A DNA stretch of 64,000 nucleotides from Selaginella moellendorffii (Eukaryota > Plantae > Lycopodiophyta), in contig NW_003314301.1 of assembly GCF_000143415.4 (NCBI RefSeq), positions 213,170 to 277,169 of the forward strand. Direction: 5' to 3'. This document shows, in pieces, positions 8,531 to 63,416 of the stretch (positions within the stretch are counted from its first letter, which is position 1; each line of letters begins with the position of its first letter). The position numbers and the translations under genes were made by a program. The notes below the pieces were generated by a model. It saw only the letters and a program-made list of their open reading frames with translations. It was not told the DNA's origin and searched no databases.

Positions 8531-9531
8531 CAATAATTATTTTCCATCCTTCTGAGAGAAGGGGATGGTATAAGGGTAAGTGTATAGTTATAATGCCATA
8601 TACTATTATAAGTGTAATAAAATATTTATATAGAATTGACTCAATTTTTAACTCACTCTCAATTCTCTCTAGATTTAAATAGTGATCCCAAAGAGATCTC
8701 ACTACTAATGATACTAGTTGATAAATGATTATTTGTTCAGTTTTTGGTTGGAAAACCAAAGGTATTAAGGGAAACTAGATTAAACATAGTTTTTAAGTCT
8801 AGGATACATTCTATCAATTTCAATATTAATTATAATAATAAAAATGGTATATTTATTATCAATAACTAATAATCAAATGAAAAAATATTTCAGCTCATCT
8901 TTTAGAATATTTAGAATTTTTTTTTGAGTGGGTTTTGATTTTGCAACTCAAGGAACTTAAGTTTCATATATGTTTCAGAGCATTTTGTATTTTAAAATTT
9001 TTTAATAAAACGAATTTTAGAAAGCGTTCTATGAATATTTCTTATTAAAATTAATTAAAATTAAAATATATGCTCTAAATATTGTAATATACTTTTTACA
9101 AATAAGAAATTAATAAATAAAACTTACTTCTTTTATTTTTCATTAAGATTCTCAAGAGTGGGTCCCCTAAAATACTACCTTGATAGAGGTGATATTGTAT
9201 TAACTGCCAGATCATCAATAAAGCTGAGATAATTCTGTCCATCATCTTATTATAGTATTTTAATTCTTTAAAATACATATTGACACTGTTGTTACAAGTT
9301 AAGTTTTATATAATATAAACTTATTTAATTATATTTTCTAATTTAGCCAATTGTTAGATTTTGAGAAAAAAATCTTAATGGCTAAGTTACAACTTAAAAA
9401 CCTTTAAATGTGTGTATGGTAGTAACTTCAGGTCATTTGTGTGGTGTCATCTACACAAAGTTTTTCCTTTCATAATCTTAAATGACATTGATTCACCAAG
9501 CTTAAATCTTATTTTAAATCATTTAACACTT

Positions 9532-10434
9532 ATGTTTGAAATAATGTTTTTAATATTTTTAATATTATTCATAAAATTTACTATTTCAACTATAAATTAT
9601 AGTGGAAAAAATAGTATGACAGTTGATAGTGTTAATTTAATTATTCTTGCTATTGAATTAATGATTAATAACACTGAATCTGGAGAGTTACCAAAAGGTC
9701 AAAGTATGCAATATGATTATACAATACAAGATGATATATATGGTCCTTTAAGCATGACAAATCAAATATGGATTTATAGTTCAAATGGAAACTTTATTGA
9801 TACAACTTGTGGAGCAAATCTTGTTGAATATGAACACGATGATGGTGATAATGTAAGACATAGATTGACTACTCTATTAAATTTATATCGTAATAATATT
9901 CTTAATTTACGTGCAAGATTTGTTAGAATAGTATTTGGTTCTTATGCTATTGAGTTTATGGAAAAACATTCTGCACATAGATTACCACAAATTCAACATA
10001 CTATATCCAATAATTTACATGATTGTAGAATTTATCTCACTACTTTAATTAGTAATATGCCTTACAATTCCTTAAAAGCTACTGAATTTTTATTATCACC
10101 AAATAATAAAGCTTATTTATATTTACATTTAAATTGTATTCTTGCTTTATATGTAAGAAATGCTATAAAATGGTATAAAGGATCTTCAAATTTTAAAAAC
10201 TGTGAATTTAAGATAGAAATGGATGGGAATATTGTACTGTATTCTGATAATTCAATTATGGTTTGGTCTCCTAATGTATATTGTAATAAGAAGAGAAATT
10301 GTGATATAGGAAAAACATTTCTTTCTCTTCAAAGTGACTGTAATTTGGTATTATATGAATCCCATCAGAAAACATTTTTAAAACATCCTAAATTGAAGGT
10401 ATTGTGGGCTTCAAATACAAACCCATGTAATTAA
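9532..10434 (+). CDS. Secreted protein: unknown N-terminal domain + C-terminal bulb-type (GNA/B) lectin domain, intronless
   Basis: Hydrophobic leader MFEIMFLIFLILFIKFTIS; LLSPN..LYLHLNCILALY, EMDGNIVLY..VWS, LSLQSDCNLVLY..LWASNT (QxDxNxVxY motifs). Confidence 0.8.
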   Translation: MFEIMFLIFLILFIKFTISTINYSGKNSMTVDSVNLIILAIELMINNTESGELPKGQSMQYDYTIQDDIYGPLSMTNQIWIYSSNGNFIDTTCGANLVEYEHDDGDNVRHRLTTLLNLYRNNILNLRARFVRIVFGSYAIEFMEKHSAHRLPQIQHTISNNLHDCRIYLTTLISNMPYNSLKATEFLLSPNNKAYLYLHLNCILALYVRNAIKWYKGSSNFKNCEFKIEMDGNIVLYSDNSIMVWSPNVYCNKKRNCDIGKTFLSLQSDCNLVLYESHQKTFLKHPKLKVLWASNTNPCN

Positions 10435-12310: not shown

Positions 12311-12789
12311 GGTCTAAAAATTAGTGCACACTTCTCTAGGATGTATGTTCTTAGTCTCCATTGACCACTACTCTGCATAAAAGACTGCAAGAAAAGTCCC
12401 AAAGCATGGTGAATGAGTGTCTTTGCTATAAACTTGCCAGTTTTCAACTTTGTGTTTATCATTCACGTAGTTGTGGGATAGGTCAGCCAGCACAATATTG
12501 TTGAGAGGTGTATGTAAAATCCCACCTCCCACTCATGCTTCTAAGCTGGCATTGGGGTTTCAGCCACCCCAATGTTCATCAACTCCCATTTTCCTGTGGA
12601 GACTGCAACAAGGAGGGGAGATCCAAAGCCATCTTTGGTCTTCCTCATTTTTTTCTTGATGTATTTGTCAGACTGTTGAAAAGCACTACTACTGTTTTTT
12701 TCTTCTGTCCTTGTTTTTTTTTTTTTTGCCTTGACAGCAACCCCAGAAAGCATTTCTCCAATCTCCTCTGAATTTGAAATTCCATGGGA

Positions 12790-23990: not shown

Positions 23991-26323
23991 CTACCTCTCT
24001 CTCTTTCCCAAAAGCCGAACTTTTTCCTTGCCGTATTTGAGAGTCTTCTTGTCACCGTTGTCAAAATTTACTGTGAACTGCGATCTGCGTTGCTGCACGT
24101 GAGTTATCGTTCCCTTCAACCTGAACACGAGAGTGGTTATAGTTAGTGTTCTTGATATATGAAACTTTCCCGCTCACCATGTTTTATCAGACGATCGGCA
24201 GACTTCCACTCTCTTCGTCACTGCGTCCGAGCCAAGCCGGTGAAGAATAGATGTGTCGTCTTCATCCGATTCTACTGCGTCCGCGACCTCCTCCTCCTGT
24301 GAGCTCGCTGGCCTTTTCCTTTTGCTTCTCTGTCCCCGAGCTGTGTTGGAGGCTTCCACAACTTCGGTGCCCGACGGCTTTTTTATCTTGAGCTTGAGCG
24401 TCTTTCTCTCGGTTTCCGGGGGCTCAACGTTGTCACTCCTGGATCTTTTCTTGGATGAGTCGGCGGCTTCTTCACTCGACTTTCCTCTTGTTTTCGAGCT
24501 GCTATTCACTTTAAACACCCATTTCCCTTCCTTTCTGGCGGGTGCTGAAGCTGGTGCTTGCTCGTCGTCTGAGGACGGACAGAGTCTAGCCATCTCGGAT
24601 TCCGAAGGAAGACCAGCCGAAGCACGCAAGCTTTTAATCTGATCCCGATCTGCCTCGTCTTTCCGTTTCCATAATTCAACCACTGCTTCCTCAACACTCG
24701 TCGCCTAAGGCGCGAAAACATGTTTGTGCAGCGAAATAGCAAGATGGCAGTATAAATTACCTGAAAGCATTCTCCACGACAGGCAGCACATGTGAAACGC
24801 AAATTTTGTATCGTTTGAAACTCCTGATATTTTTCATCGCTACAAGTAACAAACTAGGAAGTTAATGCGCGCTAAACCAGTTGATAAAAACATTACCTGA
24901 TGCCTTCACAGACACAGTGAACCCAATGTTCACAACCATCACATAAAACCATGGGCGTCGGCTCTGATTCTCTGTACACCTGATAAGACAAAGCATGAAA
25001 ATATTGTCTTATGATTGACAATGACAATACCTTCATGCAGATTGGACAGTATTTATCTTTCACAAACAGTCGTCCGCAAGCATCGCAAAACAGATACGAG
25101 TGGAACCACCTGTGAAAAGAAAGAATCATAAAGAACTTATGCTAAGGACACGAAGTACGTACCTTGAACTAGAACCCCCTCCAGGAACACGAGTACCACA
25201 GCTATGGCACTGCGAGTGTTTTGGACAAAGAAATGGTCCTTTTGCCGGAGCCTGTGAAACCCAAACCGTCATAAAAGTTCGACGAAGTAATAAGTCTCTA
25301 CCTTAGCACCACTTTGCTTGCAGTTATTGTGGTGAGCTTCATCGCATCTTTTGCAAAACAAGAGCCTGTTGGGATCACCCGTAACTTTGCAATCCTACAT
25401 CAATTATGCTCAGATAAAACGATGTCAACCTGACAAGAAAAAAACTCACTTCACACGTCCGGCAATGCAAACAGCGCCAAGAAGCCCAGTTGAATAAATC
25501 TACATCGACCATTCGAAGTAAATGACCATCCTCTATCAAAACACAACTCACCTCGATTTCCTGCCCAGTCTTTCAAACATTTGCGGTGGAATCGTCGGTC
25601 ACATCCCTGGCAAGTTAGCATCCTTTCCTGCTTCTTACTCTCGGCTTCTGCCTGTTGACACAGCCCGCAGAATATCTCCTCGGGAGGAGCAACGCTTTCT
25701 TCCGGCTGAGAAGGCGTACTCACTTCCCCTCCTCCATCATCTGGTGTCTAAGAAACCAAGAGAAAAAATTCCATCGCTTACAAACAAAAGGACGAAGATC
25801 GAAGCGAGGTACCTGATAGTCTGGTTGATTGTCCTCCGCTGGCACGCTTTGTTCTTCCATCTCCGGCTCTGGCTCTGGTTGCTCTGGTTGCTCTGGCTCC
25901 TCCTCTTGCTCGGGTTCGTGATCGGCCTCAGGTTCTGGCACTGACTCTAGAATTTTTTCTTCTTCCTGTGCTTGGAGCTCTTGAGGATCTTGAGGAGCGC
26001 CTCCATCTTCCTCGGCCGCTGCCGCTGCCACCGACGTGGATGGTTTCTTCTTTTTCTTCTTTGAGGACTCCTTGGACTGCCGCGGCACGAGAACCTCAAC
26101 CGTGTCCTCGCCAGTCGTGATCATCAGTGGAGACTTCGCCAGGAGCTTCTGGAGAGCCGCCGCATTGCGTAAGAAGGCGTCCTTGCCGCCGAGCTTGCGC
26201 AGCGGCCCTGACGATCCGAGCGCGCAGTTGCAAATCTTCCGGCTGCCAAGACAACCTCGATCTAGATCGGGAGAGTGAGAGAATCGCTTACCATGTGAGA
26301 GGACATGCCACATGAAACGCCAT
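23991..26323 (-). CDS. PHD-finger protein (multiple PHD fingers, C-terminal Tudor-like domain)
   Basis: Start MAFHVACPLT; CGLC..CQGC..FH..C; CDACGRLFVK..YCPIC; MVLCDGCEHWVHCVC; KRVEV..W..G. Confidence 0.9.
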
Positions 26324-27247
26324 CGCCTCCAGCTTCTTCCAGCCCTAAATTATAAGAGCTATTTACACTTAATTATTTTAAATGGAAATTTAATTTATGT
26401 AATGTTTGTATTTTGCATCAAGCATAAATTTAATTTATAAACTCATTTATAATAAATATTATTAAGTTTTGTAATTTAAGTGTATTTATAAATTTAAAAA
26501 AATAAGATTAAAATCATAATAATAATAAGAATATTTTAGATAACTTGTAAAGAATTTATTAAAACTACAAAAAGCTTTTACTTATAACTAAGTGAATTAT
26601 ATATTAAATGATGTATATCTTGTACTCAAAATAAAGATCTTAATAAAATATCTTCATAATTTAAATGTTTATTTTCCTTTAAAATAATAAAATAATAACT
26701 TTATATTTTTGATGGGAATAATGAGAAGGGTATTAATAAATAAAAGATGCTGGATCATGAAACATTTTGATTATGAATATTTATATTTTCTTTAGATTTT
26801 TAATGTTTTACATACATGAATTAAAATGTTTATACTTAAGTATAATTTTGCTAATTTTCTAATTGAGATCAAATAATATATATGTAATGTTATGAATAAA
26901 ATCTTTATATTTTTCTCATAACATTTTCACCATTATGGAAAAGTATATATTTAATATTATAAAGAAAATAAAAGTAACAATAGTATGTTAATGTAATTTT
27001 ATTGTTACCCTTTATCATTTTTACTAATTAAAAACTATTAGTTTATGAGTTTTACAACTGTTTATTTTATTAATGCTATATTATATACTTCAATGTATCA
27101 ATTACTATTTTAATTAAATTTATGTTATTGTTTCTAAAGTACAAATGGCAACAACTTTAAAAGAAGATTATGTCCCCTTCATGATTAATATTATTACAAG
27201 AATAAAATTCTAAAAACTCAAATTTAGATAATCCAAAAGCCATGTTT

Positions 27248-27860
27248 TCCCGAGCTGGGAGGCCCTTGGACATCCTACACTACTCTCAGCTGGGACAACA
27301 AGTATGCTGGTGTGGATGTCCTCTTGGCAAAGGTTGCTAAAAACCCTACAATCTTCTTCTATCTTCACTGGAAAATGCTGATGCTGATCTTATCATATAG
27401 GTGTTTTTGGGAGGAAATCAGAACTGGCTTGCGGCTTACAAGGACCGTGCTGATGATTTCGTGTGCTCGGCCATGCCTGGACGAGCCAGGCTCACACCAG
27501 GTCCATCAAAATCAAAACTATCTACAATGGCAATTTGATGAGAATCGTATGTATCATAACAGGGGGGCTATTCTACCAAGGCGCAAACAATCTCCAATAC
27601 GCTACGAGCAACGCATTTCTGCTCATCACATATGCAGGATACCTGAGCAGCGCTAAACAAAGTGTCAGGTGCGGAGGAGGTAGCAATTTCAAGCCAAATG
27701 AGCTGATCACTTTTGCAAAAAGACAGGTATAGTGTGTCTCTCAAAATTGTTCCATGCTATGCAGGTTTATTTATATCATTATTATCGTTGCTATCATGAA
27801 CACACAGATAGATTACATCCTAGGCAACAATCCGCGGAAAATGTCCTACATGGTTAATCT
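27248..27860 (+). pseudogene. Glycoside hydrolase family 9 endoglucanase internal fragment
   Basis: SWDNKYAGVDVLLAK, NNLQYATSNAFLL.TY, FAKRQ|IDYILGNNPRKMSYMV; truncated at both ends within AT-rich DNA; introns retained. Confidence 0.85.
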
Positions 27861-28009
27861 TGCAAAATTAATCCAATAGCTAGAATTGTTTTAGGCTTCT
27901 AGTTATAATGGTTGAGATTTTAAGATTTTAAATTTGGATATTCGAGAGTCATTTATCTATTTAAAACTAAATGCTTGGAATTATAAGAACCCTAGTTTAG
28001 CCATGGTGG

Positions 28010-31000
28010 ATGGAGAGGAGGGATTCCAGGCTCGTCTACCAGGCGCTCGTGGACGAGGGCGTCAAGCCGAGCATTGGCGTTCTTCTCGCAGCGATCAAGG
28101 TATGTAAGAATTCACGGGATTTACAAACCGGGAGGAGGATTCACGGGGATGTGATCAACAACAGGGAATTCTCGTCTCACCGCTTCGTGGCAAGCGCATT
28201 GGTGGACATGTATGCGAAATGCGGCCGACTGGGGGATGCCAGGAGGGTGTTCGAGAGCATGAGCTCTCACGACTTGGTGTCGTGGAATTGCATGATCCAA
28301 GGCTATGCTCAGAGAGGGGAGATGGATTTAGCACTGGAACTCTACGATCGGATGCAAAGGCAGGGCTGCGATCCAAACCGAGGGACACTGCTCGCTGCTC
28401 TCAAGGCATCCGTGAGCCTGGCTGAGAGAGAAGAAGAAGTAGAAGAAGAAAGCTCGAAAGTTTCTAGACGTACGAAGCGTGGACAGTGCTTGGAAAGAGG
28501 CCGAGAGATACACTCTCACGCTGTGAAGACTGGCAACGAGCTCGATCCTTTCGTGGCCAACACTTTGGTGGCCATGTACGCGAAGTGTGGAAGCATGGAA
28601 GAGGCTCGCGAGATTTTCGACAAGATGAGGCAGCGGGACGTGGTGTCCTGGAACTGCTTGGTGATGGGATACGCGAAGAACGAGCAAGGCGAGATGGCTC
28701 TGGAACTCTTCTCGCGGATGGAAGAACAAGGCTGCCAAGCAAACGCTGTGACTTTTCTCGGTGCTCTCAAGGCTTGCGTGAGCTTGGCTGAGAAAGAGCA
28801 AGGCACGCTCGTCCAGGGAAGGGTGATAAAGTGCGAGTGCCTTGAGCGAGGGAGAAGGATCCACTCCCGAGCTGCAGAAACTTTGGGACCGGATCTCTTC
28901 GTGGCGAATGCTCTTATCGATTTCTACTCGAGGTGTGGAAGCTTAGACGAAGCACGCAGTGTTTTCGAGATCTTGGACAGGCGCCGAGACGTGGTCTCAT
29001 GGAATTCCATCATCCAGGGGTGTACTCAATCTGGAGAGGGAGATCTGGCTCTAAGTTTCTATCGAGCTATGAAAGGTGACGGCTTCCAGCCGAACAGGGT
29101 GACGGTTCTTGCCGCGTTGAAAGCTTGTGTGAGCTCGGCTGAAAAAGAAGAAGATGGAGATCCGGAAAGCAGAGTTCCATCGGCAAAGTTAGCTCGAATC
29201 CAAAAGCGTTTGGAGCAAGGCCGAGAGATTCACTTCGAAGCAGCCAAGCTTGGACTGGACTCCGACGTTTTTGTGGCCAGCGCGCTCGTCGACATGTATG
29301 CCAAGTTCGGGAGCTTGCCGGAAGCTCGCAAAATTTTCGAGAGCATGAAGAAGCGGAGCGTAGTTCCCTGGACCGCCATTATCATGGCCTATGCTCAAAA
29401 CGGCGATGGAGAGATGGCTTTGCGACTCTACTCACGCATGCAAGACGAAGGCTGTGCTCCAAACCGGGTCACCGTTCTCGCTGCTGTCAAGGCTTGCGTG
29501 ACTCTGTCGGAGAAAGAGCCCGCCATGAAAGAGCTCTCGCTGGGAAAAGGAAGAGCTATACACCGGCAGGCCGTGGAAATGGGAGTGGACTCGGAGCTGT
29601 TCGTCGCCAACGCTCTCATCGACATGTACTCGAGGTGTGGCAGCATGGCGGACGCGTCTCAAGTTTTCCACGGCATGAAGGCTCGAGATATCGTCTCCTG
29701 GAACTCCATCATCCAAGGATTTGCACAGCGGGAAGGAGGAGATCCAGAGACGGCCTTGAAACTCTACGCGAGAATGCTGGACGAAGGGAAGTGCTCGCCA
29801 AACCAAGTGACAACTCTCGCAGCACTGAGAGCCTGTGTGATTCTCTCCGGGCGGGAAGACGCACGAAAGCTAGCCGATGTCGGTGTGAAAGTCAAGAGCT
29901 TGGAAAGAGCTCGAGGCATTCATGGCGGAGTTCTCGGGAAACCCGAGACTTTGGTGGCCAACAGTTTGATCGACGTTTACTCGAAGTGTGGCAGCATGAG
30001 CGATGCACGCCAAGTCTTCGATGGTATGGAGGAGAAGCAACGTAGCACAGTTTCGTGGACGGCCATTATCATGGGCTACGCGGAGAATGGCGATGGCGAA
30101 GAAGCTCTGGAGCTGTTCGAGCGTATGATGAAGGAAGGGAGCTTTGCTCCGAGTGAAGTAACTCTTCTCGGTGCCTTGAAGGCTTGCTCAAGCCTTGCAG
30201 AAAAGGAAGAGGCGATTTACGTCCAAGGCAAGGCTGTGAAAGCTCGTAGCTTGGAACGGGGAAGATATCTTCACTCTCAAGCGATCAAGCTTTGGAACAG
30301 GGACGAAGAGCTCAACGTGTTCTTAGCCAATGCTTTGATCGACATGTATGCAAAGTGTGGAGAAATGGTGGAAGCCCAACAAGTCTTTGACGAACTGGAC
30401 CATCGGAAGAGCGTGGTTTCATGGAACTCGATGATCCAAGGCTATGCTTACGCTGGAAATGGTGCTAAGGCTTTGGAACTGTTTGATCAGATGGATGTAT
30501 TCCAAAGAGATGGAGTAACTTATCTCGCAGCTCTCAAGGCTTGTGCGAGCATTGGAAGAAAGAGTCTTGGAAAAGGACGAGTCATACACGAAGAATTTAT
30601 AGGAATGGACAATATCAATGACAATAGAATAGATGTATTGCTGGCTAACTCGCTTATAGACATGTACGCGAAGTGTGGAAGCCTGGATGAATCCTGGATG
30701 GTTTTCGAGAGGATTCATCCAAAACAACGAACAATCTCTTCGTGGAACTCTATCATTCTTGCTCATGCTGAGAGTGGCGAGGAAGAACAGGCTATGGAGC
30801 TCTACTCGCAGATGAAAGACTTGGAAAACTTCCAGCCGGATGCGGTAACTTATTTTGTGGTGCTCAAGGCCTGTGGGAACTTAGCAGCGCTTGAGACTGG
30901 CAAGAAGATCTGCAACGAGATTCGAGAAGTTCCAGGGAAACTCCAAGATCAAGTGATGCTCGCAAACTCTATCGTCAGGTTCTTCGCGAAATGTGGATGC

Positions 31001-31573
31001 ATGGACGAAGCCGAGCGAGTTTTTCACTCGATTTCCAGGAAAAACATTGGCTCCTGGAGTGCTCTCATCGCCGGCTATAGCTTCCATGGTGACACTGATC
31101 GAGTGTTTGAGCTCCTGGAAACGATGATCCAGGAAAAAAATCCTCGGCTCCTACCAAATGAGATGATCTTTCTTTCAGTGCTCAATGCTTGCAGCCATGC
31201 TGGGCTCGTCGAGAAAGGCTTGGAGCTCTTTGATGTAATGCGCTACACGTATGGGATCCCAGCAGGGATCCACCACTACGCTTGCATGGTGGATCTTTTA
31301 GCTCGAGCAAACAAGCTTGATGAAGCTTTGGCGATGGTGGAAGGCATGCCTGTGGAGGCCGACGCAGTGGTGTGGACATCGCTGCTGGCTGGAGCCACGA
31401 AGTGGAAGAATGCAAGGATTGGATGCATTGCATTTGAGAAAGGATTGGAACTAGGTTCTGGCAAAGATCGTGTAGCAAATTTGATTCTCATGTCTAATCT
31501 TTATGCAAGCCTTGGAATGTTTGAGGAGGTGATAAAGATCCAAGACATGAAAGAACAATTACATAATTCATAA
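28010..31573 (+). CDS. Large PLS-class PPR protein (E-type end, no DYW), intronless
   Basis: Repeated FVANALIDMY.KCG..A..VF..M / VSWN.II.GY / PN.VT.LAALKAC triplets; HHYACMVDLLARA, VWTSLL, LMSNLYA. Confidence 0.96.
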   Translation: MERRDSRLVYQALVDEGVKPSIGVLLAAIKVCKNSRDLQTGRRIHGDVINNREFSSHRFVASALVDMYAKCGRLGDARRVFESMSSHDLVSWNCMIQGYAQRGEMDLALELYDRMQRQGCDPNRGTLLAALKASVSLAEREEEVEEESSKVSRRTKRGQCLERGREIHSHAVKTGNELDPFVANTLVAMYAKCGSMEEAREIFDKMRQRDVVSWNCLVMGYAKNEQGEMALELFSRMEEQGCQANAVTFLGALKACVSLAEKEQGTLVQGRVIKCECLERGRRIHSRAAETLGPDLFVANALIDFYSRCGSLDEARSVFEILDRRRDVVSWNSIIQGCTQSGEGDLALSFYRAMKGDGFQPNRVTVLAALKACVSSAEKEEDGDPESRVPSAKLARIQKRLEQGREIHFEAAKLGLDSDVFVASALVDMYAKFGSLPEARKIFESMKKRSVVPWTAIIMAYAQNGDGEMALRLYSRMQDEGCAPNRVTVLAAVKACVTLSEKEPAMKELSLGKGRAIHRQAVEMGVDSELFVANALIDMYSRCGSMADASQVFHGMKARDIVSWNSIIQGFAQREGGDPETALKLYARMLDEGKCSPNQVTTLAALRACVILSGREDARKLADVGVKVKSLERARGIHGGVLGKPETLVANSLIDVYSKCGSMSDARQVFDGMEEKQRSTVSWTAIIMGYAENGDGEEALELFERMMKEGSFAPSEVTLLGALKACSSLAEKEEAIYVQGKAVKARSLERGRYLHSQAIKLWNRDEELNVFLANALIDMYAKCGEMVEAQQVFDELDHRKSVVSWNSMIQGYAYAGNGAKALELFDQMDVFQRDGVTYLAALKACASIGRKSLGKGRVIHEEFIGMDNINDNRIDVLLANSLIDMYAKCGSLDESWMVFERIHPKQRTISSWNSIILAHAESGEEEQAMELYSQMKDLENFQPDAVTYFVVLKACGNLAALETGKKICNEIREVPGKLQDQVMLANSIVRFFAKCGCMDEAERVFHSISRKNIGSWSALIAGYSFHGDTDRVFELLETMIQEKNPRLLPNEMIFLSVLNACSHAGLVEKGLELFDVMRYTYGIPAGIHHYACMVDLLARANKLDEALAMVEGMPVEADAVVWTSLLAGATKWKNARIGCIAFEKGLELGSGKDRVANLILMSNLYASLGMFEEVIKIQDMKEQLHNS

Positions 31574-52671: not shown

Positions 52672-54681
52672 TTATAAACCATCCGTGACTGCCGCACGCA
52701 TAACTGCAGGAGGAATGCCACCCTTCTTGACCAAAGTTTGAGCTAGCTTGTCCGCCTGATCACCCATTCCAGCCTTCCAGAGCCGCCGTATTATCGAGTT
52801 CACAGTCATCAGCTTTATGAGACCTTTGTCGACCATCATGTAGATAACTTGAAAGCCAGGCTCCAGATTCTTCAGCCTTGACAAGATTATGTCCAGTCCT
52901 TTCGGAAAACCATCTCGCTGGTCAGCGAACTGATAGTCTTCAGCCATCTTTCCAGACCTGGTAAAGCCTTCTGTTAGAGTCTTGTAAGTGACTGCAGTTG
53001 GAAGGCATTTGGCGTCCACCATCGCAACAAAAACTGCGCAAGCTTCCTCAATCTTCACGACCTTGCAGAAACCGTCGAGAAGAATGTTGTAAGTGACAAC
53101 ACTTGGTAGGCCTTCGTCTTGCATCTCGTGAAAGAAAGCAAGAGCCTCGCCCATCTTTGCTGCCTTACACAGCCCGCCGAGCAAGGAATTGTAGATGTGA
53201 GTGTTGGCTTTGGATCCCATCTGGCCCATCGAAAGTAGAAACCAGCGTGCTTCGGAAAACCTTCCAGACTTGCAAAGACCGTCGATGATAGCACACGAAG
53301 TGACCACGCTTGGAGCACTCAAGCTCGAGCTCAGTATCCCTTTGAGATGCCTGCGAGCTTTTTCCGGCCTGTGTGTCTTGTAGAGACCATCTACGATCAT
53401 CGTGTATGTCCCTGTGTTTGCTGGAGCACGCCCCTTCCTCAACGTTTCATGAAGAAGCTTGCAAGCTTTGTCAGCTTCCCCGCTGTTACAAAGCTCCTCG
53501 ATCATCAAACAGTAGACTTGAGAACTTGGTTGGCATCCCACTCGATCCATCTCTTCGAGCAGCTCCAAGGCTTGCAAGCTCCGTCCCGACTTACAGAGCC
53601 CATTCACAAGAGTGCCAATCATGACAGGATCCGGAGCGCACTTGTTCCCTTGCGTAACGTTGCTGAAAAGCTCGAGTGCCTGTTCCACCATGTCTAGCTC
53701 GCAAAATCCAGCAACGATACTGTTGTAAGTCGCGGCGTCTGGATTCAGACCCCTGCTCGTCGACATCTCCTCCAAAAGCCTCAATCCATCCTCCACTCTT
53801 TTCGACTTGCAAAGCCCCTGGATAAGAATGCCGTAAGTGACAGCGTTGATCATAGCCTTGTCCTTGCATCCCTCGAAAACCAGCTCTAGAGCTTCGTCTA
53901 CTCTTCCGGCCCTGCACAGCCCATCGATCAGAGCATTCGCAGCGGCAAGCGTTACCATCGTGGAGTTCCTCTTGGTTCTCTCCGCCATCCGTGTGAAGAG
54001 CTTGACAGCCTTGTCAAAGCTCCCGGCCTTGCAAAGCCCCGCCACCAGCGTGTTGCAAGTCACAGCACTGGGCATCCATCCCAGGTCCACGATCATCTCC
54101 TCCGCGAGGTTGAAAGCATCGCTTAGCTTCGCCACCTTGCAAAACCCATCAATCAGTGTATTGTACATGGCAGGGTCGACTCCACTAGTATCAATCACCG
54201 ACCTGAAGTGTTCCAAGGCCTCTTCCATCCTCCCAATCTGGCAAAAGCCCTTGAGAATCTCACCGTGCGTCGTTTCGTTGGGCGCCAGATCGCGAGCTTT
54301 CATCTCCTTGACGAGCCGCAGCGCCTTGCACACCTCCCCGGTCTCGCAGTAGCCCCGGACGAGGAGATTGTAGCTCGCCACGGATGGATAGTGCAGCGGC
54401 AGGAGGAGATCTGTGAATAATCTGTGCGCCTCGCCTGGACGGCCCTCATCTACGACAACGCGCAGCAGGGAATTGCAGGTCTGCGTGTCGTGCTCGAACT
54501 TGGCCTGCGTTGGCGCCCAGCGGAAGAAATCTAGCGCAATGTCGGTCTTGTGCACGCTCGCCATAGCCTCGTGGAAGATCTGCGGCGTGATTGCGAGGGA
54601 GTACCTGTCGAGAACCTCCCTGGCCGTGATTCCGCGCATTTCCGCCCCACGCAGGAGTTCGATCAAGACCTTGGCTGCCAT
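52672..54681 (-). CDS. P-class pentatricopeptide repeat protein, intronless
   Basis: 35-aa repeats YN.LIDGFCK..A...EM...P..VTY; ALDFFRWA leader. Confidence 0.95.
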   Translation of the reverse strand: MAAKVLIELLRGAEMRGITAREVLDRYSLAITPQIFHEAMASVHKTDIALDFFRWAPTQAKFEHDTQTCNSLLRVVVDEGRPGEAHRLFTDLLLPLHYPSVASYNLLVRGYCETGEVCKALRLVKEMKARDLAPNETTHGEILKGFCQIGRMEEALEHFRSVIDTSGVDPAMYNTLIDGFCKVAKLSDAFNLAEEMIVDLGWMPSAVTCNTLVAGLCKAGSFDKAVKLFTRMAERTKRNSTMVTLAAANALIDGLCRAGRVDEALELVFEGCKDKAMINAVTYGILIQGLCKSKRVEDGLRLLEEMSTSRGLNPDAATYNSIVAGFCELDMVEQALELFSNVTQGNKCAPDPVMIGTLVNGLCKSGRSLQALELLEEMDRVGCQPSSQVYCLMIEELCNSGEADKACKLLHETLRKGRAPANTGTYTMIVDGLYKTHRPEKARRHLKGILSSSLSAPSVVTSCAIIDGLCKSGRFSEARWFLLSMGQMGSKANTHIYNSLLGGLCKAAKMGEALAFFHEMQDEGLPSVVTYNILLDGFCKVVKIEEACAVFVAMVDAKCLPTAVTYKTLTEGFTRSGKMAEDYQFADQRDGFPKGLDIILSRLKNLEPGFQVIYMMVDKGLIKLMTVNSIIRRLWKAGMGDQADKLAQTLVKKGGIPPAVMRAAVTDGL

Positions 54682-56292
54682 GAGCCCTAGAAAAACCCCC
54701 GCATTAGGGTTTTAAAGAGCTATAAGAAATTATTAATCAAATTTTAAACTTATTTTATATAATGTTAATAAAAATTTCAGAATGATGAAAAAATATATTA
54801 TGTATTTAGAAAAATTACGATATAGTATGGATGTCCAATAGTTGATAGTTAAAAAAACACAAAATGTATATAATAGTTAATATTAAAAAAATTGTTTAAA
54901 ATAGTTTAGTTGTATTGGGTAAATTTAATTTGGTTTTTTAGCTCTTTCTTAACAAATATTCAATGTATTTGTAAGTAGAACAATAACAAATTTGTGATAA
55001 TATAATACTTACTTGTCAATTACAAAAACCATGCTGTCAATATTTTCATAATTTGTAAGAACATGTTTCATGATGATATTAAAGAATGGAAAATGCAACT
55101 TTTAGTATTTTGTAAAGTCAATATCTTCCACTTAAAGTACTGTACCCTGTCATCACATTATACACCAACTCAAAAATGTTAATAATTATTTACTTTAAAT
55201 AATATATTATATACATCACAAAATACATATACTAAATTAAAATTTAAAGAGCATCCTTAAAAGATTGTACTCTATAGTGCATATATTTTACATTTTGATG
55301 AATATGTATTTTTTAATATTTTTATAACTTTTGAAATACTATTTCCCTTGGACCAAAAAGTAAAGAAAAACATATTTTATTATATAACATTTTTAAAATT
55401 AATATGCTACAAGTTTCAATTTTTTTATACTAATCTTTTAATAAAATACTATATAATGGACTATTTAGTATTTAAAAGATGGTGTTTGTCAAATGTTATT
55501 ATAAATTTTATGTATGAATTTCTTTTAAGAAACTTAGGTTATTATCTAATATTAGTAAAAAAAAGTGAAGAAAGTAAATATCAAACAAAGCTTATTTAAT
55601 TAATTAATATTTTTAAAAAAAAAATTTTAAATTCAATAAACAAGCTATTAGATCAATAAGAATTATTGTGAGTGTCTACATTTACACTAGACCTCTTTTA
55701 TAATTATTTTATATATATAATAAAAAACTTATATGTTTAATATTTAAATTTTAAATTTTAGATTTAAATGTACATATAAATGAATTTAGTTTTAAAAAAT
55801 ATTCAGAAAAAATATTACATAATCGAATAGATTTTTCATGCAACAACAGAAAAAGAAAACTTTTCTTTTTTGTAATGAGTTCTGGAAGTCATGATGGTGA
55901 TTTTGCATGGTGGGAACCTGACTGTTAGGACCATCACAGATGGTGATGCTCCCTTAGGTTTTGGGGGAGTGCTCATTGAAGTAGGCACAACTTCAGATGT
56001 CCGCATTACCATCTGCATCTCTCAAGGAACAATGAGTTGTATGTGTAGATTCTTTTGTTTCCATCAAAGATTATTAAGAGTAGGTTTTATTCATTTCAGA
56101 TGCTGGGCGAGCAGTTGTACCCACTGGTGGATATAGAACATGACCACGCATGGCCATGGAGATGGACAAAACAGAGGTTTTACATCTGATTGAGTGACCC
56201 GAGGCTCTGAAGGCCAAGGCCATGGGAGTGTTGAGGAAGGCCAAACTTTTTCAATGAGGCCTTTGCTAGCTTTAGTTGAAGGATTCTATTGT

Positions 56293-57381
56293 TTAATTCG
56301 TCTGGTGAAGCTTTGCAACTTTGAGAAGATACTCCAACAGGATGGCAGGCTTGCTGAAGAACGGGCTGTGATCGGAATGAACATGAAAAACCTGTTTTGG
56401 TGGATTGTACTCGATCATCAAATCCTGCAGCTTGGGTGAAATCAGCTTGTCTAGTGTTGTCTTCACGAAGTACCTCGGAATGGATCCATACTTCTCCTGT
56501 GAGAGCTCAGCACTGTGGTGCTTGAAAAGCGGGCGAGGTTTCAACAGCAACTTTGCTAGAACTACATCTTTGGATGGAGAAAGGTGGTAGAGCACGTCTT
56601 GTACTAAGTCGAGCTTGAATGCCGCAGCCACAGGGGTCTTTGATCCATTGGAGTAGAAGTACACTTTGCTGTTCTGTACCACCTTGTTGTTAGTAATAAC
56701 CTGTAAGTTGACACCAATTGAACACTTATAAGCATCCACTTTGCTGCTGCTCTTGATGTATCTATAGAACAGCTTTGGCAAAGAAGAAGACAAATGAAAT
56801 CAAGCACAACATCAAAACAATGTACCTGGTTGTAAACAAAAGTCCCGTTAGAGCCCCTTGGAAACATATTTGCAGCCACAAAAATAGCAGCTGCAATTCG
56901 GTGAGGGTACTTTTCCATCACATAGGTAAGACTGTCACCTCCGAGACTGTGACCAACCAAGATGATCTGCAGTAACAGTACTTGTTTTGGGTGAAGACCA
57001 GCAATAAAACAGAAATATCAGGTTTGTAATGTCAGTTACCTTGTGGCCACGCAGCACCGATCGGAGCAGCTGGAGTAGCGGGCCGGAGTATTGCTCCAGG
57101 CTGGTCACAGACCGGGGGTCAACTCCGTTGATCCCCGCGCTGGTCAAGTCAACGGCGCTGACCCTGTGGCCTCGCTTCTGTAGTTGATCGATTACCTTGT
57201 ACCAGCACCAAGCGCCGTGGCCTGCTCCATGAACAAGAACAAAATGGGAACTGGCATTCTGCTGCTGACTCGCTGTTCGGATCCTTGATGCTGTGGAAGT
57301 ACCAATTAGATTGCCGCCATTGCAGAAGAATGATCCGAACAATCCAAAGAGTAGCAGCAGCAACACAGCAACCTGATGCAT
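56293..57381 (-). CDS. Methylesterase (MES/SABP2-like alpha/beta-hydrolase) with signal-peptide-like leader, 3 exons
   Basis: HFVLVHGAGHGAWCW, GHSLGG, LDKLI, SDHSPFFSKP; exons ~57381-57040, 56987-56827, 56700-56293. Confidence 0.92.
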
Positions 57382-58541
57382 CTCCTTAGTGCACTCACCG
57401 AGATTCTCACCAAATTGGAGAAGCAGAACAAGCTGCTGCTTACCCTTGAATCAAAGGGCAATTGCTACACCACACATATATATTAAAAAAGAGATGTTGG
57501 AGCTGTCAACGTGGAAAGCAAGGGAGCAAACTGTAAGGCTTTTTCTATTATGACTTTCCGATTTATGATAAAATATGGCAATTCCAATTTATTAGAAAGA
57601 GTTTCAACCGTTTGTTCCTAGCTTAGTAAACCCCTAACCATGCGCTTGCCATGTTTGGGGACAACATTACTGTTACAATTACTCTTAACCAAGCTTGTGC
57701 TATTAAGCTTCAAGAGACCCTCGTGGTAGTAAGAAGCTCCAAGTCACAACAAGTCACAGTTACCCGATGTCCAGGTCCTTGATGGGCGGCCAGGCCTGAA
57801 TCGAGCTTCACCCTCGAGCAGCGCACTCCATGGATATAGCTGCCAGCGGTGTCATCCATCCGGCATGGCCGCTCCAAGAGCTTTATACCAAATGCGTAGA
57901 AGTTGATCTATAATAACCATGACTTTAATTTATCAAATTGAAAAATAAATAATATAAAAGAAAATAAATTGAAAACTAAACTTGACCATATACCTTTTAG
58001 GAAATTCTAGATTATTCATTACAATCCATACGTTATTCATTTAAATCTCTTATAAATATGAATAAACCAAAAAACCATATTGTATTTAATAGTTTCTATA
58101 TAGTGTACTTTGAAATTATGCTAGATTAAACTGTATACTAGTTTAAGAGAAACAACCAAAAAAACTTTGGTAAATAACGAGTATACTAATTTAAATATAG
58201 CCTATCTCTGGTTTCTAGGAAATCTGTAATTAAGGAACCAGAATCCTGTTCTAAACGTGAAACGTTCAAGTTGGTAGGACAGATAAATTGCATGGACCAG
58301 ATAACTGTATGGAAAACGTGCACCGTATAAAACAACAAGATTCCTCTCCAAGTATGTGGCTACGTGTGTAACGTACAGAATACGGACCACACGGAAATAA
58401 AAAACGTGAAATGTGATCTCTAATAGCTCTGATAGTATAAAAGACCCTTCTCCAGCCTCTGTTTCCTCAACCCACAGAGGAGTAGAAAACATTCTCCAAT
58501 CAAGTTGATCAGATCGATCAAACAGTTTTCACCATTTCGAA

Positions 58542-59585
58542 ATGGCTGCAATCGTGTTGATGATTGCGTTTCTCGTGATGGCTGCAGCATGGAAGATGGT
58601 GTGTATCCGCAAGAGAGAAGAGAGGGCACGATTTCTAGCGTCGCTCCACCCCGTGAGAGACGCACACAAGATCTTGTGGTACATGTACTCGGTGGAATTC
58701 CCCTTCCTCTCGCAAAAGGCGCTCGAGTTTGGCACAATCCGCACGCTCGGCATCCCGGGGATCACAAATCTGCTCTTCAAGACCAAGTACGGCCTCAAGG
58801 ATCCGCAGAAGCGCGCCGCCGATACCAACATTCTGGTGAGCGAGATGATCCACCACCACGTCGACAGTGATCGCGGCTCATACGCGGTGAGGAGATTGAA
58901 TGGAATCCACAACAAATTCAAGATCCCAAACGACCAATTCGCCTACGTCCTCTGTCTCAACGTGGTCAGCCCCATTGATTTCTCCGAGAGATTTGGATTC
59001 CGCAAGTGGACCGACAACGAGAAGGAGGCCGCGTATGTTGTGTGGCACGACGTGGGCGTGAGGATGGGCATCACAACCATCCCAGATAGCATTCCAGAGA
59101 TGCGGGAGTACATTCGCGATTACGAGGCCAAGAACGCCATCTTGACGGACAAGAACAAGAGCATCGTCCAGGATCTCAAGCATCTGGTGCTGGATGCATT
59201 TCCTCGCCCCGTGCAGCCGCTGGTCGAGACTGGGATCTGTGCACTCATCGATCCCACAATCAGGAGCGCTGTTGGATTGGAAAAGCCTCCAGCAATTGTG
59301 GAGTGGATCATCTTGGGTGCGTTCAAGCTGCTGGCCGGGAGCTTCGTGTCCGCGTTCTTGCCTCCCAGGCGTGTGGAGGATGCAAAGGGCAGCATTGAGG
59401 TGGACTGGTGTCCTAATCCCGCTGCCAATCCGGAAGAGTACCGGCAGCTCAACGTGAATGTGTATCGGCCACCGGCATTTGAGAAGGGATACAAGCTGGC
59501 GGAGCTGGGAGCGCTGAAATCAGGCAAGCTTGGACCATACTACGATGGAGGCTTGCGCTGCCCCTTCCGGCAAATGCACGCATAG
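58542..59585 (+). CDS. MpaB/DUF2236 (ER-bound oxygenase / rubber-oxygenase-like) protein, intronless, copy 1
   Basis: N-terminal TM; EFPF..KALEF..RT.GIP.I..LL, KRAADT, AVRRLNGIH, I.ND..YVL, FGFRKW..E, G.RMGI..IP. Confidence 0.85.
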   Translation: MAAIVLMIAFLVMAAAWKMVCIRKREERARFLASLHPVRDAHKILWYMYSVEFPFLSQKALEFGTIRTLGIPGITNLLFKTKYGLKDPQKRAADTNILVSEMIHHHVDSDRGSYAVRRLNGIHNKFKIPNDQFAYVLCLNVVSPIDFSERFGFRKWTDNEKEAAYVVWHDVGVRMGITTIPDSIPEMREYIRDYEAKNAILTDKNKSIVQDLKHLVLDAFPRPVQPLVETGICALIDPTIRSAVGLEKPPAIVEWIILGAFKLLAGSFVSAFLPPRRVEDAKGSIEVDWCPNPAANPEEYRQLNVNVYRPPAFEKGYKLAELGALKSGKLGPYYDGGLRCPFRQMHA

Positions 59586-59849
59586 AAATAGAACGGGCAT
59601 AGGACATTCGTTCGGAGAACAAAGCATCATTTGAAAATGCGTAGTTTACGTGAATCTTTTTGTAATTTTTGCAGAACAATATGGGATCCAAACAATTTAG
59701 AAACACGCTCTGGCTAAAGACAATGATTCTAAGATATTACAGGTTGTAGTTAGAAGTCTAAGTTGACACACTCACTTCACACCTAAGAGAAGGAAAAGCT
59801 TGTCAAGCGGAAGGAACAAAGGTCAAAAGCTACGTTAATCCATGGGGCC

Positions 59850-60254
59850 TCAGCATGGCACATGCCCACCATCAGGTGCGAACTGCCAAACTTTCCTTGG
59901 AGTCCAGTGCCGCACTCGCTGGCCAATCAGGATACCCGAGTACAACTTGAGCTCTCCCACTGAGATGGCTGCAAAGCCGCTTTCAAAGCTCGGCATCCCC
60001 CATGCCTGTTCAAAGCAACAGACTCTAAACACACGAACAAAACTCACCTTGGCACGTTCAAGGCAAAAGACTTTAAACACACGACAAAAACTCACCTTGG
60101 AGCAGTAGTACAACCGGCCAACAGGGGGCAACCCATCCGGAATCGTAAGGTCCTTCAATAACAAGGATGCTCTCCAGGCTGCAAACTTATCCCGAACCTC
60201 CTGCTTGGTGAAGGCCTCTTCCGATATCGGCTCTCTGGGTGAGTCAGGGAACGA
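59850..60254 (-). CDS. 3' part of unknown gene (left-arm copy); 5' end lost in gap
   Basis: Mirror of 60361-60863. Confidence 0.4.
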   Translation of the reverse strand, partial: SFPDSPREPISEEAFTKQEVRDKFAAWRASLLLKDLTIPDGLPPVGRLYYCSKVSFCRVFKVFCLERAKVSFVRVFRVCCFEQAWGMPSFESGFAAISVGELKLYSGILIGQRVRHWTPRKVWQFAPDGGHVPC

Positions 60255-60257
60255 TTT

Positions 60258-60357
60258 NNNNNNNNNNNNNNNNNNNNNNNNNNNNNNNNNNNNNNNNNNN
60301 NNNNNNNNNNNNNNNNNNNNNNNNNNNNNNNNNNNNNNNNNNNNNNNNNNNNNNNNN
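60258..60357. other. Assembly gap (100 N) at the palindrome centre
   Basis: Run of n. Confidence 1.
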
Positions 60358-60360
60358 TTC

Positions 60361-60863
60361 TGTATGCCATGGACATGAGGGAATGGCGATATGCCATTTC
60401 TGAGATCGATGGATATGTGCCGGTCAAGGGAAACCAGCTGGTTGAAGCTTCTCTGCATTCGTTCCCTGACTCACCCAGAGAGCCGATATCGGAAGAGGCC
60501 TTCACCAAGCAGGAGGTTCGGGATAAGTTTGCAGCCTGGAGAGCATCCTTGTTATTGAAGGACCTTACGATTCCGGATGGGTTGCACCCTGTTGGCCGGT
60601 TGTACTACTGCTCCAAGGTGAGTTTTTGTCGTGTGTTTAAAGTCTTGTGCCTTGAACGTGCCAAGGTGAGTTTTGTTCGTGTGTTTAGAGTCTGTTGCTT
60701 TGAACAGGCATGGGGGATGCCGAGCTTTGAAAGCGGCTTTGCAGCCATCTCAGTGGGAGAGCTCAAGTTGTACTCGGGTATCCTGATTGGCCAGCGAGTG
60801 CGGCACTGGACTCCAAGGAAAGTTTGGCAGTTCGCACCTGATGGTGGGCATGTGCCATGCTGA
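60361..60863 (+). CDS. 3' part of unknown, probably lineage-specific gene (right-arm copy)
   Basis: Open frame with coding-like GC; probable GTGAG..AACAG intron ~60618-60707; ends ..DGGHVPC*. Confidence 0.45.
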
Positions 60864-63416
60864 GGCCCCATGGATTAACGTAGCTTTTGACCTTTGTTCC
60901 TTCCGCTTGACAAGCTTTTCCTTCTCTTAGGTGTGAAGTGAGTGTGTCAACTTAGACTTCTAACTACAACCTGTAATATCTTAGAATCATTGTCTTTAGC
61001 CAGAGCGTGTTTCTAAATTGTTTGGATCCCATATTGTTCTGCAAAAATTACAAAAAGATTCACGTAAACTACGCATTTTCAAATGATGCTTTGTTCTCCG
61101 AACGAATGTCCTATGCCCGTTCTATTTCTATGCGTGCATTTGCCGGAAGGGGCAGCGCAAGCCTCCATCGTAGTATGGTCCAAGCTTGCCTGATTTCAGC
61201 GCTCCCAGCTCCGCCAGCTTGTATCCCTTCTCAAATGCCGGTGGCCGATACACATTCACGTTGAGCTGCCGGTACTCTTCCGGATTGGCAGCGGGATTAG
61301 GACACCAGTCCACCTCAATGCTGCCCTTTGCATCCTCCACACGCCTGGGAGGCAAGAACGCGGACACGAAGCTCCCGGCCAGCAGCTTGAACGCACCCAA
61401 GATGATCCACTCCACAATTGCTGGAGGCTTTTCCAATCCAACAGCGCTCCTGATTGTGGGATCGATGAGTGCACAGATCCCAGTCTCGACCAGCGGCTGC
61501 ACGGGGCGAGGAAATGCATCCAGCACCAGATGCTTGAGATCCTGGACGATGCTCTTGTTCTTGTCCGTCAAGATGGCGTTCTTGGCCTCGTAATCGCAAA
61601 TGTACTCCCGCATCTCTGGAATGCTATCTGGGATGGTTGTGATGCCCATCCTTACGCCCACGTCGTGCCACACAACATACGCGGCCTCCTTCTCGTTGTC
61701 GGTCCACTTGCGGAATCCAAATCTCTCGGAGAAATCAATGGGGCTGACCACGTTGAGGCAGAGGACGTAGGCGAATTGGTCGTTTGGGATCTTGAATTTG
61801 TTGTGGATTCCATTCAATCTCCTCACCGCGTATGAGCCGCGATCGCTGTCGAGGTGGTGGTGGATCATCTCGCTCACCAGAATGTTGGTCTCGGCGGCGC
61901 GCTTGTGCGGGTCCTTGAGGCCGTACTTGGTCTTGAAGAGCAGATTTGTGATGCCCGGGATGCCGAGCGTGCGGATTGTGCCAAAGTCGAGCGCCTTTTG
62001 CGAGAGGAAGGGGAATTCCACCGAGTACATGTACCACAAGATCTTGTGGGGGTCTCTCACGGGGTGGAGCGACGCTAGAAATCGTGCCCTCTCTTCTCTC
62101 TTGCGGAAACACACCATCTTCCATGCTGCAGCCATCACGAGAAACGCAATCATCAACACGATTGCAGCCATTTCGAAATGGTGAAAACTGTTNNNNNNNN
62201 NNNNNNNNNNNNNNNNNNNNNNNNNNNNNNNNNNNNNNNNNNNNNNNNNNNNNNNNNNNNNNNNNNNNNNNNNNNNNNNNNNNNNNNNNNNNGAAACAGA
62301 GGCTGGAGAAGGGTCTTTTATACTATCAGAGCTATTAGAGATCACATTTCACGTTTTTTATTTCCGTGTGATCCGTATTCTGTACGTTACACACATAGCC
62401 ACATGGAGAGAAATCTTGTTGTTTTATACGCTGCACGTTTTCCACACAGTTATCTGGTCCATGCAATTTATCGGTCCTACCAACTTGAACGTTTCACGTT
62501 TAGAACTGGATTCTGTGTCCTTTATTACAGATTTCTCAAAAGATGCAGTAGAAACCATATTTAAATTAGTATATTCGTAATGTACCAAAGTTTTTTTGGT
62601 TGTTTCTCTTAAACTAGTATACAGTTTAATCTAGCATAATTTCAAGAAATACCATATAATGCAATATGGTTTCTCGGTTTATTCATATTTATAAGAGATT
62701 TAAATAAATAATGTATTTTTATTGTAATGAATAATGTAGAATTTTCTAAAAGGTATATGGTCAACTTCATTTTCTTTTATATTATTTATTTTTCAATTTA
62801 AAGTCATGGTTATTATAGATCAACTTCTATGCATTTGGAGTAAAGCTCTTGGAGCGGCCATGCCGGATGGATGACATCATTGGCAGCTAGATTCATGGAG
62901 TGGGCTGCTCGTGGGTGAAGCTAGATTCAGGCCTGGCTGCCCATCAAGGAGCCTGTTGACCTGGACATTGGGTAACTGTGACTTGATGTGATTTTGCAGC
63001 TTCTTACTACCACGAGGGTCTCTTGAAGCTTAACAGCACAAGCTTGGTTAAGAGTAATTGCAACAGTAATGTTGTCCCCAAACATGGCAAGCGCATGGTT
63101 AGGGGTTTACTAAGCTAGGAACAAACGATTCACACTCTTTCTAATAAATTGGAATTGCCATATCTTATCATAAATCGGAAAGTCATAATAGAAAAAGCCT
63201 TACAATTTGCTTCCTTGCTTTCCATGTTGACAGCTCCAACATCTCTTTTTTAATATATATGCTTGGTGTAGCAATTGCCCTTTGATTCAAGGGTAAGCAA
63301 CAGCTTGTTCAGCTTCTCCAATTTGGTGAGAATCTTGGTGAGTGCACTAAGGAGATGCATCGGGCTGCAGTGTTGCTACTGCTACTCTTTGGATTGTTCG
63401 GATCATTCTTCTGCAA
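60459..63416. repeat. Right arm of inverted duplication
   Basis: Reverse complement of 57320-60254; contains N gap 62193-62292. Confidence 0.95.
61128..62171 (-). CDS. MpaB/DUF2236 oxygenase-like protein, copy 2
   Basis: 347 aa; 7 substitutions relative to copy 1. Confidence 0.8.
   Translation of the reverse strand: MAAIVLMIAFLVMAAAWKMVCFRKREERARFLASLHPVRDPHKILWYMYSVEFPFLSQKALDFGTIRTLGIPGITNLLFKTKYGLKDPHKRAAETNILVSEMIHHHLDSDRGSYAVRRLNGIHNKFKIPNDQFAYVLCLNVVSPIDFSERFGFRKWTDNEKEAAYVVWHDVGVRMGITTIPDSIPEMREYICDYEAKNAILTDKNKSIVQDLKHLVLDAFPRPVQPLVETGICALIDPTIRSAVGLEKPPAIVEWIILGAFKLLAGSFVSAFLPPRRVEDAKGSIEVDWCPNPAANPEEYRQLNVNVYRPPAFEKGYKLAELGALKSGKLGPYYDGGLRCPFRQMHA

Follow-up and report, generated by a model that had tools for sequence, protein, structure and literature searches.

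Three described systems lie closest to the gene considered here. MpaB', from the mycophenolic acid biosynthesis of Penicillium brevicompactum, is an integral monotopic oxygenase bound to the endoplasmic reticulum (ER) that breaks a farnesyl side chain at its C19=C20 bond (bioRxiv 10.1101/524025). Latex clearing protein (Lcp) is a heme-b dioxygenase that cleaves polyisoprene; in LcpK30 DUF2236 is defined by Arg164, Thr168 and His198, the last being the proximal heme ligand, and all three are essential (PMC5522427). Trans-anethole oxygenase (TAO) of Stenotrophomonas maltophilia acts on a phenylpropene in catabolism, turning trans-anethole into p-anisaldehyde (PMC3774712). We have analysed a 64,000-nucleotide stretch of the genome of the lycophyte Selaginella moellendorffii (contig NW_003314301.1, positions 213,170 to 277,169; hereafter the window), which carries an intact, intronless gene of this family (copy 1) and a convergent, nearly identical paralog (copy 2). 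In our reading, which we consider probable, copy 1 is a functional nuclear Selaginella gene from an old, vertically inherited land-plant clade of the MpaB/TAO/Lcp family, shaped by lineage-specific intron loss and amplification.

Copy 1 encodes an anchored member of the MpaB/TAO/Lcp family

A preliminary description of the window, made from the letters, had proposed an intact intronless open reading frame (ORF) of 347 amino acids with an N-terminal membrane anchor and four family motifs, and all of these are present. The ORF listing of the window contains exactly this frame (Table 1), which opens with an ATG and runs through 347 codons to a stop. The motif KRAADT occupies residues 90-95, RRLNGIH residues 117-123, NDQFAYVL (described earlier as ND..YVL) residues 130-137 and RMGI residues 174-177. 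Over its first 17 residues the protein averages 2.55 on the Kyte-Doolittle hydropathy scale, and the AlphaFold model places a single long helix at residues 2-34. Copy 1 aligns with its homologs from end to end with no inserted block, and it is therefore truly intronless.

The assignment to the DUF2236/MpaB family was borne out by a hidden Markov model search, in which Pfam PF09995 (MPAB_Lcp_cat, DUF2236) matched residues 86-251 (E=3.3e-12) and reached 47.4 bits, the cutoff being 23. When a profile of 25 homologs was run against the PDB, it recovered TAO (8s1j) over residues 33-282 with E=4e-15, the only solved structure matched. The AlphaFold model of copy 1 is all-alpha (predicted local distance difference test score 86.1, predicted template-modelling score 0.85). 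Its meaningful Foldseek matches are 8s1j (template-modelling (TM) score 0.75, E=1.5e-7) and the Lcp structures 5o1m/5o1l (probability 1.0, TM ~0.45), and no others. The relatedness to Lcp that had been claimed earlier is seen in the fold and in the conserved Arg, Thr and His positions. An NCBIfam scan of the copy 1 protein gave no match, as expected for a eukaryotic protein. With its Pfam score, its fold and the Arg, Thr and His residues, copy 1 belongs to the PF09995 superfamily.

The predicted heme site can be laid out against LcpK30. R91 and T95 of KRAADT correspond to Arg164 and Thr168, and D94 takes the place of the distal ligand Lys167, as judged from motif spacing and alignment. H123, the last residue of RRLNGIH, is the predicted proximal heme ligand and corresponds to His198. 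TAO aligns its KRADDT opposite KRAADT and its NKIH opposite H123. Across the 25-sequence alignment R91 and H123 are invariant and D94 and T95 nearly so (T95 in at least 90%). Within Selaginella, H123 is kept in 17 of 17 proteins and in all six coding sequences (CDSs) examined, and R91 and T95 likewise in every copy examined. Position 94 (codon 58821-58823) is Asp in copy 1 only and Glu in the 16 other Selaginella copies; outside Selaginella Asp is the consensus. We found no usable paper on the 8s1j structure or on the heme chemistry of TAO.

MpaB' is a described enzyme that copy 1 resembles in architecture: it too is a PF09995 protein of ~350 amino acids with an N-terminal membrane anchor, and in RefSeq the proteins of Selaginella and Physcomitrium bear the names 'mycophenolic acid synthesis protein B-like' or 'ER-bound oxygenase mpaB'. 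Judged by its sequence, copy 1 has the architecture of the MpaB' subgroup, that is, the N-terminal anchor together with a place in the eukaryote-type clade (support 100/99, see below), and by analogy with MpaB' the protein would be located in a membrane, presumably that of the ER. Unlike MpaB', copy 1 does not lie in a gene cluster of the mycophenolic acid type; its neighbours are pentatricopeptide repeat (PPR) genes and an alpha/beta-hydrolase that was not duplicated along with it. The closest relatives recovered include no MpaB sequences of Dikarya, and our tree has none.

TAO is the closest solved structure and its KR-DDT and N-IH motifs align with those of copy 1. However, it is a soluble bacterial protein of ~300 amino acids, ~20% identical, that has neither the N-terminal anchor nor the C-terminal GYK..ELG...CP tail. 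LcpK30 (5o1l/5o1m) has the 3/3 globin core and the DUF2236 Arg/Thr/His triad in common with copy 1, although the sequence match between them is not significant (E>1). Lcp, a bacterial enzyme, is secreted and has additional domains at both termini, and its Lys167 is replaced by Asp or Glu in Selaginella. Polyisoprene rubber is an unlikely substrate for an ER-anchored plant enzyme.

The C-terminal tail of copy 1 (window 59480-59585) follows the pattern GY[KR][IL]xE[LV]G ... CP[FL], includes a Cys-Pro dipeptide and is of low confidence in the model. It is conserved from some bacteria through plants (homologs P0023, P0253, P0043 and P0024), and its Cys-Pro pair bears a possible likeness to heme-regulatory motifs.

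A land-plant clade in species-tree order

Searched exhaustively with phmmer, 1.8 billion cluster representatives yielded 1212 relatives. The best of these after Selaginella are ferns, at 36-43% identity (Adiantum nelumboides and two adjacent genes of Ceratopteris richardii). With a plant profile as query, further paralogs of Ceratopteris and Adiantum were recovered, together with sequences from Adiantum capillus-veneris and from the moss Physcomitrium patens, whose homolog is annotated 'ER-bound oxygenase mpaB'. The next relatives, at ~30-36% identity, are eukaryotic microbes: among the fungi chytrids (Batrachochytrium, Polyrhizophydium, Chytridiales) and Basidiobolus; among the protists Phalansterium (Amoebozoa), Pharyngomonas (Heterolobosea), Chaetoceros and an ochromonad (Ochromonadaceae; stramenopiles). 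Bacterial homologs come from Chloroflexia, Gaiellaceae, Limnocylindria and Chitinophagales and include many metagenomic sequences; they are mostly ~280 amino acids long. The N-terminal anchor is present in the plant, protist and chytrid homologs and absent from these bacterial ones. A first single-sequence, word-indexed search had returned Selaginella proteins only, and the search with the 25-sequence profile gave few names.

We inferred a maximum-likelihood tree of 64 sequences with IQ-TREE (LG+C20 posterior mean site frequency model), in which the labelled bacterial outgroups are five named proteins from metagenome-assembled genomes. All eukaryote-type proteins, every one of them N-terminally anchored, form one clade (100/99), and all plant sequences form one clade nested within it (98/98). 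The plant clade opens with one unidentified transcript; Physcomitrium follows, and after it Selaginella (100/100) as sister to the ferns (96/88), the two joined at 95/86. Moss followed by Selaginella with ferns is the order of the species tree; for land plants this is largely the pattern that the preliminary description had named as speaking against its own inference of a horizontally acquired gene, and that inference is not supported. Copy 1 groups with the moss and fern genes and does not nest in a bacterial or fungal donor clade; the plant clade lies among anchored homologs from Amoebozoa, Heterolobosea, stramenopiles and chytrids and not among bacteria. When the top 150 representatives were added in a FastTree analysis, only four further sequences entered the plant clade, all of them single-exon fragments.

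The moss gene looks transcribed but disrupted. In a Physcomitrium patens transcript contig (L005, SRR5905104, ~790-900) an in-frame stop follows ...YEVKHKV while homology continues past it, a frameshift lies ~90 nucleotides beyond the stop, and the RefSeq models end at 202-203 amino acids. Such a state is consistent with a family prone to loss. In Batrachochytrium dendrobatidis (DS022304.1, 3176-4112) the chytrid homolog is directly followed downstream by a second, very diverged DUF2236 paralog of 22-28% identity, so that tandem duplication in the DUF2236 family extends beyond plants.

Precise intron loss and host-like composition

A paralog in S. moellendorffii that is 68% identical to copy 1 (XP_024536846, scaffold GL377594.1) has a 98-nucleotide GT-AG intron of phase 2, which interrupts the codon directly preceding the FGFR motif. 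The homologous codon carries a phase-2 intron in three more loci: a Selaginella-like genomic contig (L001), a metagenomic fern-like contig (L004) and a bryophyte-like one (L010). A Ceratopteris-like gene model that consists of exon 2 only starts at this same site; our evidence for the fern intron comes from that model and the metagenomic fern-like contig. In the chytrid gene the only intron follows residue 199, a position different from that in plants. In copy 1 the frame is continuous through the corresponding codon, R150. Since the intron is found in the paralog and in three loci of the plant clade, copy 1 has lost it precisely. On these gene structures, the intronlessness of copy 1 is a derived loss within Selaginella and no trace of prokaryotic origin. 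The usual cause of precise intron loss is a cDNA-mediated event, and we infer such a step behind the loss in Selaginella.

The GC content of the copy 1 ORF is 55.6% (72% at third codon positions), against 37% and 47% in its flanks and 50-55% in native coding ORFs of the window. The earlier label 'GC-rich' thus holds relative to the flanks and fails relative to the native genes: the composition of copy 1 is host-like, with no anomaly. Horizontal acquisition had been argued from intronlessness, from GC content and from a family described as mainly actinobacterial and fungal, and the first two do not carry the argument once the intron loss is derived and the composition is that of the host. The gene is indeed in a plant genome, as had been stated. 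All named entries of its protein cluster are from S. moellendorffii, a protein identical to copy 1 sits on a 1.74-Mb record, and the Selaginella RefSeq cluster together with ordinary plant nuclear neighbours excludes contamination.

Expansion and purifying selection in Selaginella

The 90%-identity cluster of copy 1 holds 22 protein variants, and the 20 that are named are all Selaginella moellendorffii RefSeq entries spread over many scaffolds. Several are numbered consecutively, which suggests tandem arrays. Fifteen of the 16 cluster members listed, and all six CDSs examined, are intact at 345-348 amino acids; the shorter one (P0007, 300 amino acids) still has both motifs. Between copy 1 and the intron-bearing paralog dS is 1.44 (saturated) and dN/dS 0.16, and among intronless copies at dS ~0.23 the ratio is 0.10-0.15. 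Very young copy pairs give noisy values of 0.1-0.9, each from fewer than 20 substitutions. The expansion in Selaginella is under purifying selection, with dN/dS of 0.10-0.16.

The preliminary description had missed both copy 2 and the inverted duplication to which the two window copies belong. This duplication spans 57320..63416 with arms of ~3 kb. Copy 2 differs from copy 1 by 7 amino acids and 13 nucleotides (dN/dS 0.33), and all 13 nucleotide differences are confined to the first 574 nucleotides of the CDS. The difference-free 3' half suggests gene conversion or assembly collapse. Two stretches of 100 N lie in the palindrome, and the exact arrangement of the window copies consequently depends on scaffolding. 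Elsewhere in the genome the 2.9-kb unit recurs twice in direct tandem on GL377654.1, at 93-95% identity, and GL377734.1 carries a gap-free head-to-head pair of oxygenase genes. Paired arrangements are therefore typical of this Selaginella family, which makes the palindrome of the window plausible despite the N gaps. On GL377734.1 the head-to-head pair is flanked by short, diverged fragments of 77-81% identity (5896-6202 and 12314-12641) that cover the oxygenase upstream region and residues 16-69 and are probably remnants of further degraded copies.

Table 1. Features of copy 1, copy 2 and the surrounding inverted duplication, in window coordinates
Feature	Position	Strand	Evidence
TATA-like box TATAAAAG, possible core promoter	58436..58443	+	read from sequence, ~100 nt 5' of ATG
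Copy 1, intact intronless CDS, MpaB/DUF2236-type oxygenase	58542..59585	+	ORF, Pfam, AlphaFold, Foldseek
N-terminal hydrophobic membrane anchor, ~residues 1-21, opening the long helix 2-34	58542..58604	+	hydropathy, AlphaFold
KRAADT; R91/T95 equivalent to LcpK30 Arg164/Thr168	58809..58826	+	pattern and spacing
RRLNGIH; H123 (58908-58910) predicted proximal heme ligand, equivalent to LcpK30 His198	58890..58910	+	alignment
Codon R150, intron site of related plant genes; frame continuous in copy 1	58989..58991	+	paralog (L002) and L001, L004, L010
Copy 2, intact 347-aa paralog, convergent with copy 1	61128..62171	-	tblastn, 98% protein identity
Inverted duplication, left arm; the 2.9-kb unit that recurs in the genome	57320..60254	.	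inverted repeats I1-I6
Inverted duplication, right arm	60459..63416	.	inner 1734 nt 99% identical, outer parts 90-98%
100-N assembly gap, palindrome centre	60258..60357	.	
Second 100-N gap, just upstream of copy 2	62193..62292	.	

Proposed history and predicted function

In the reading that we prefer, the land-plant clade of the MpaB/TAO/Lcp family would predate the split between mosses and vascular plants and would have been inherited vertically since, being kept in moss (in disrupted form), lycophytes and ferns, with none seen in the named seed plants here. The ancestral plant gene would have had one phase-2 intron, which one Selaginella lineage lost precisely. Segmental duplication in tandem, inverted and dispersed form would then have multiplied this intronless lineage into at least 22 protein variants, the window holding a convergent pair of them.

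By homology, the product would be an N-terminally membrane-anchored, all-alpha, globin-like heme-b oxygenase. Heme b would be bound through His123, and O2 would be activated on a distal side lined by Arg91, Asp94 and Thr95. The substrate would be lipophilic, with an isoprenoid or prenyl chain and an aryl-propene as the candidates, and its C=C bond would be cleaved to carbonyl products at the cytosolic face of the ER membrane. The fold, the conserved residues, the anchor and the purifying selection are shown by the analysis, whereas heme binding, the ER location, the reaction and the class of substrate are all carried over here from the described enzymes, and on that analogy we somewhat favour alkene cleavage as the activity of the Selaginella protein.

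Several points weigh against the reading as a whole. The named matches include no seed plant, liverwort, hornwort or green alga, in a word-indexed search that scored just the 8000 candidates with the most words in common with the query; absence from seed plants and green algae is suggestive only. The sister group of the plants, Pharyngomonas plus unknown sequences, is weakly resolved (80/46 and 98/82), and with such support an older eukaryotic descent is indistinguishable from an ancient transfer into early land plants. The stem branch of Selaginella is long (1.09) and could distort its placement. What can be said of the function of the plant members comes from homology, and the predicted heme ligands were mapped by motif spacing and alignment rather than on a heme-bound model. 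The N gaps interrupt the two-copy palindrome. Finally, none of the Selaginella proteins examined is recorded on a transcript-type (Logan) contig, which leaves expression of the Selaginella copies unproven.

Alternative explanations

The alternative that survives best, and that we hold to be possible, is a single ancient transfer in which an early embryophyte or streptophyte ancestor received, from a microbial eukaryote, an MpaB-like gene already of the anchored eukaryote type, followed by vertical inheritance, intron gain and loss in seed plants. From the land-plant ancestor onward it agrees with our preferred explanation and differs only in where that ancestor obtained the gene. The patchy set of eukaryotes with the gene (Phalansterium, Pharyngomonas, Chaetoceros, Ochromonadaceae, chytrids and Basidiobolus) would fit such a transfer, although repeated loss gives equal patchiness and loss is under way in Physcomitrium. 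Further points in its favour are that no green alga appears among the named matches of the 8000-candidate search, that heterotrophic protists and unknown sequences, and not algae, stand closest to the plant clade, and that the chytrid gene does not have the plant intron position. However, no donor emerges from the tree, and an exclusive clade of plants and sampled early-diverging fungi is rejected (approximately unbiased test, p-AU 0.005), for a group that was defined after the tree had been seen.

The copies might also be non-functional relics that play no part as enzymes, such as dead retrocopies or a product of misassembly, which we judge improbable. In favour of this, a transcript was found for none of these exact proteins, copy 2 is flanked by N gaps and very young pairs have dN/dS of 0.3-0.9 (from fewer than 20 substitutions). 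However, the ratio falls to 0.10-0.15 once substitutions suffice, and ORFs of 345-348 amino acids are kept by 15 full-length listed cluster members and by all six CDSs, with both motifs retained even in P0007. Other scaffolds, moreover, carry tandem and head-to-head pairs that are free of gaps.

A recent, Selaginella-specific transfer of a bacterial or fungal DUF2236 gene that is still intronless and GC-rich is very hard to credit: copy 1 does lack introns and exceed its flanks in GC, and the family is abundant in bacteria (hundreds of ~280-amino-acid bacterial or metagenomic matches), but the plant clade follows the species tree, the paralog and three plant-clade loci have a conserved intron where copy 1 is continuous, dS of 1.44 to the paralog shows that the gene has long been in the genome, its GC content is that of native genes, and the N-terminal anchor and C-terminal tail are of eukaryotic type.

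Significance

The MpaB/TAO/Lcp family of alkene-cleaving enzymes has a land-plant branch in mosses, lycophytes and ferns, which is strongly expanded in Selaginella, decaying in Physcomitrium and apparently missing from seed plants. Database labels of the 'mpaB-like' kind were already in place; in the literature we found no paper on plant members beyond the passing mention of a Selaginella transcript. What stands out against this background is the clade of seed-free plants (as far as seen), the expansion in Selaginella and the secondary loss of the intron. The locus also corrects a tempting call of horizontal gene transfer, in which intronlessness and local GC richness were misleading: the loss of the intron is secondary, and in composition the gene is like its host.

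Should the enzymes prove active, they could provide new C=C-cleaving biocatalysts and would mark an unexplored area in the specialised metabolism of seed-free plants. A bolder scenario, which we rate as unlikely, would have seed-free plants acquire their ER-anchored MpaB-type heme dioxygenases in one event from a microbial eukaryote around the colonisation of land, with the more than 20 copies in Selaginella, amplified after the intron loss, serving a lineage-specific pathway for cleavage of prenyl or terpenoid side chains. If that were true, plants would have a route to nor-isoprenoid or meroterpenoid products independent of the carotenoid cleavage dioxygenases.

Neighbouring genes and other features of the window

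Besides the oxygenase copies, the window contains three PPR genes, ORC3, Aha1, a germin-like cupin, a kinase, a subtilase, an FKBP and an alpha/beta-hydrolase exon. The last of these is a methylesterase-like first exon with a FVLVHGAGHGAWCWYK motif (56935-57381, minus strand), which stands head to head with copy 1 at a distance of ~1.2 kb; only its first ~60 nucleotides are inside the repeat arm. A conserved two-gene cluster of oxygenase and alpha/beta-hydrolase, in analogy with MpaB and MpaH, was considered and rejected, the exon being absent at the two other oxygenase loci examined.

The sequence TATAAAAG upstream of copy 1 may possibly act as its core promoter. The 3' ORFs of the repeat unit (59842-60108 and 60369-60863) gave no Pfam match to transposon domains, and capture mediated by a transposable element is accordingly unsupported.

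The three PPR genes are long and intronless (3585-5093, minus; 28010-31573, plus; 52672-54681, minus), and one of them encodes 1187 amino acids with a C-terminal E motif. Selaginella has a very large repertoire of RNA-editing PPR proteins, with which three such genes in 64 kb are in keeping. Strongly AT-rich intergenic stretches (GC 0.25-0.34) occur at 6001-10000, 26001-28000 and 54001-56000; at 8-10 kb such a stretch overlaps an ORF that weakly matches B_lectin.

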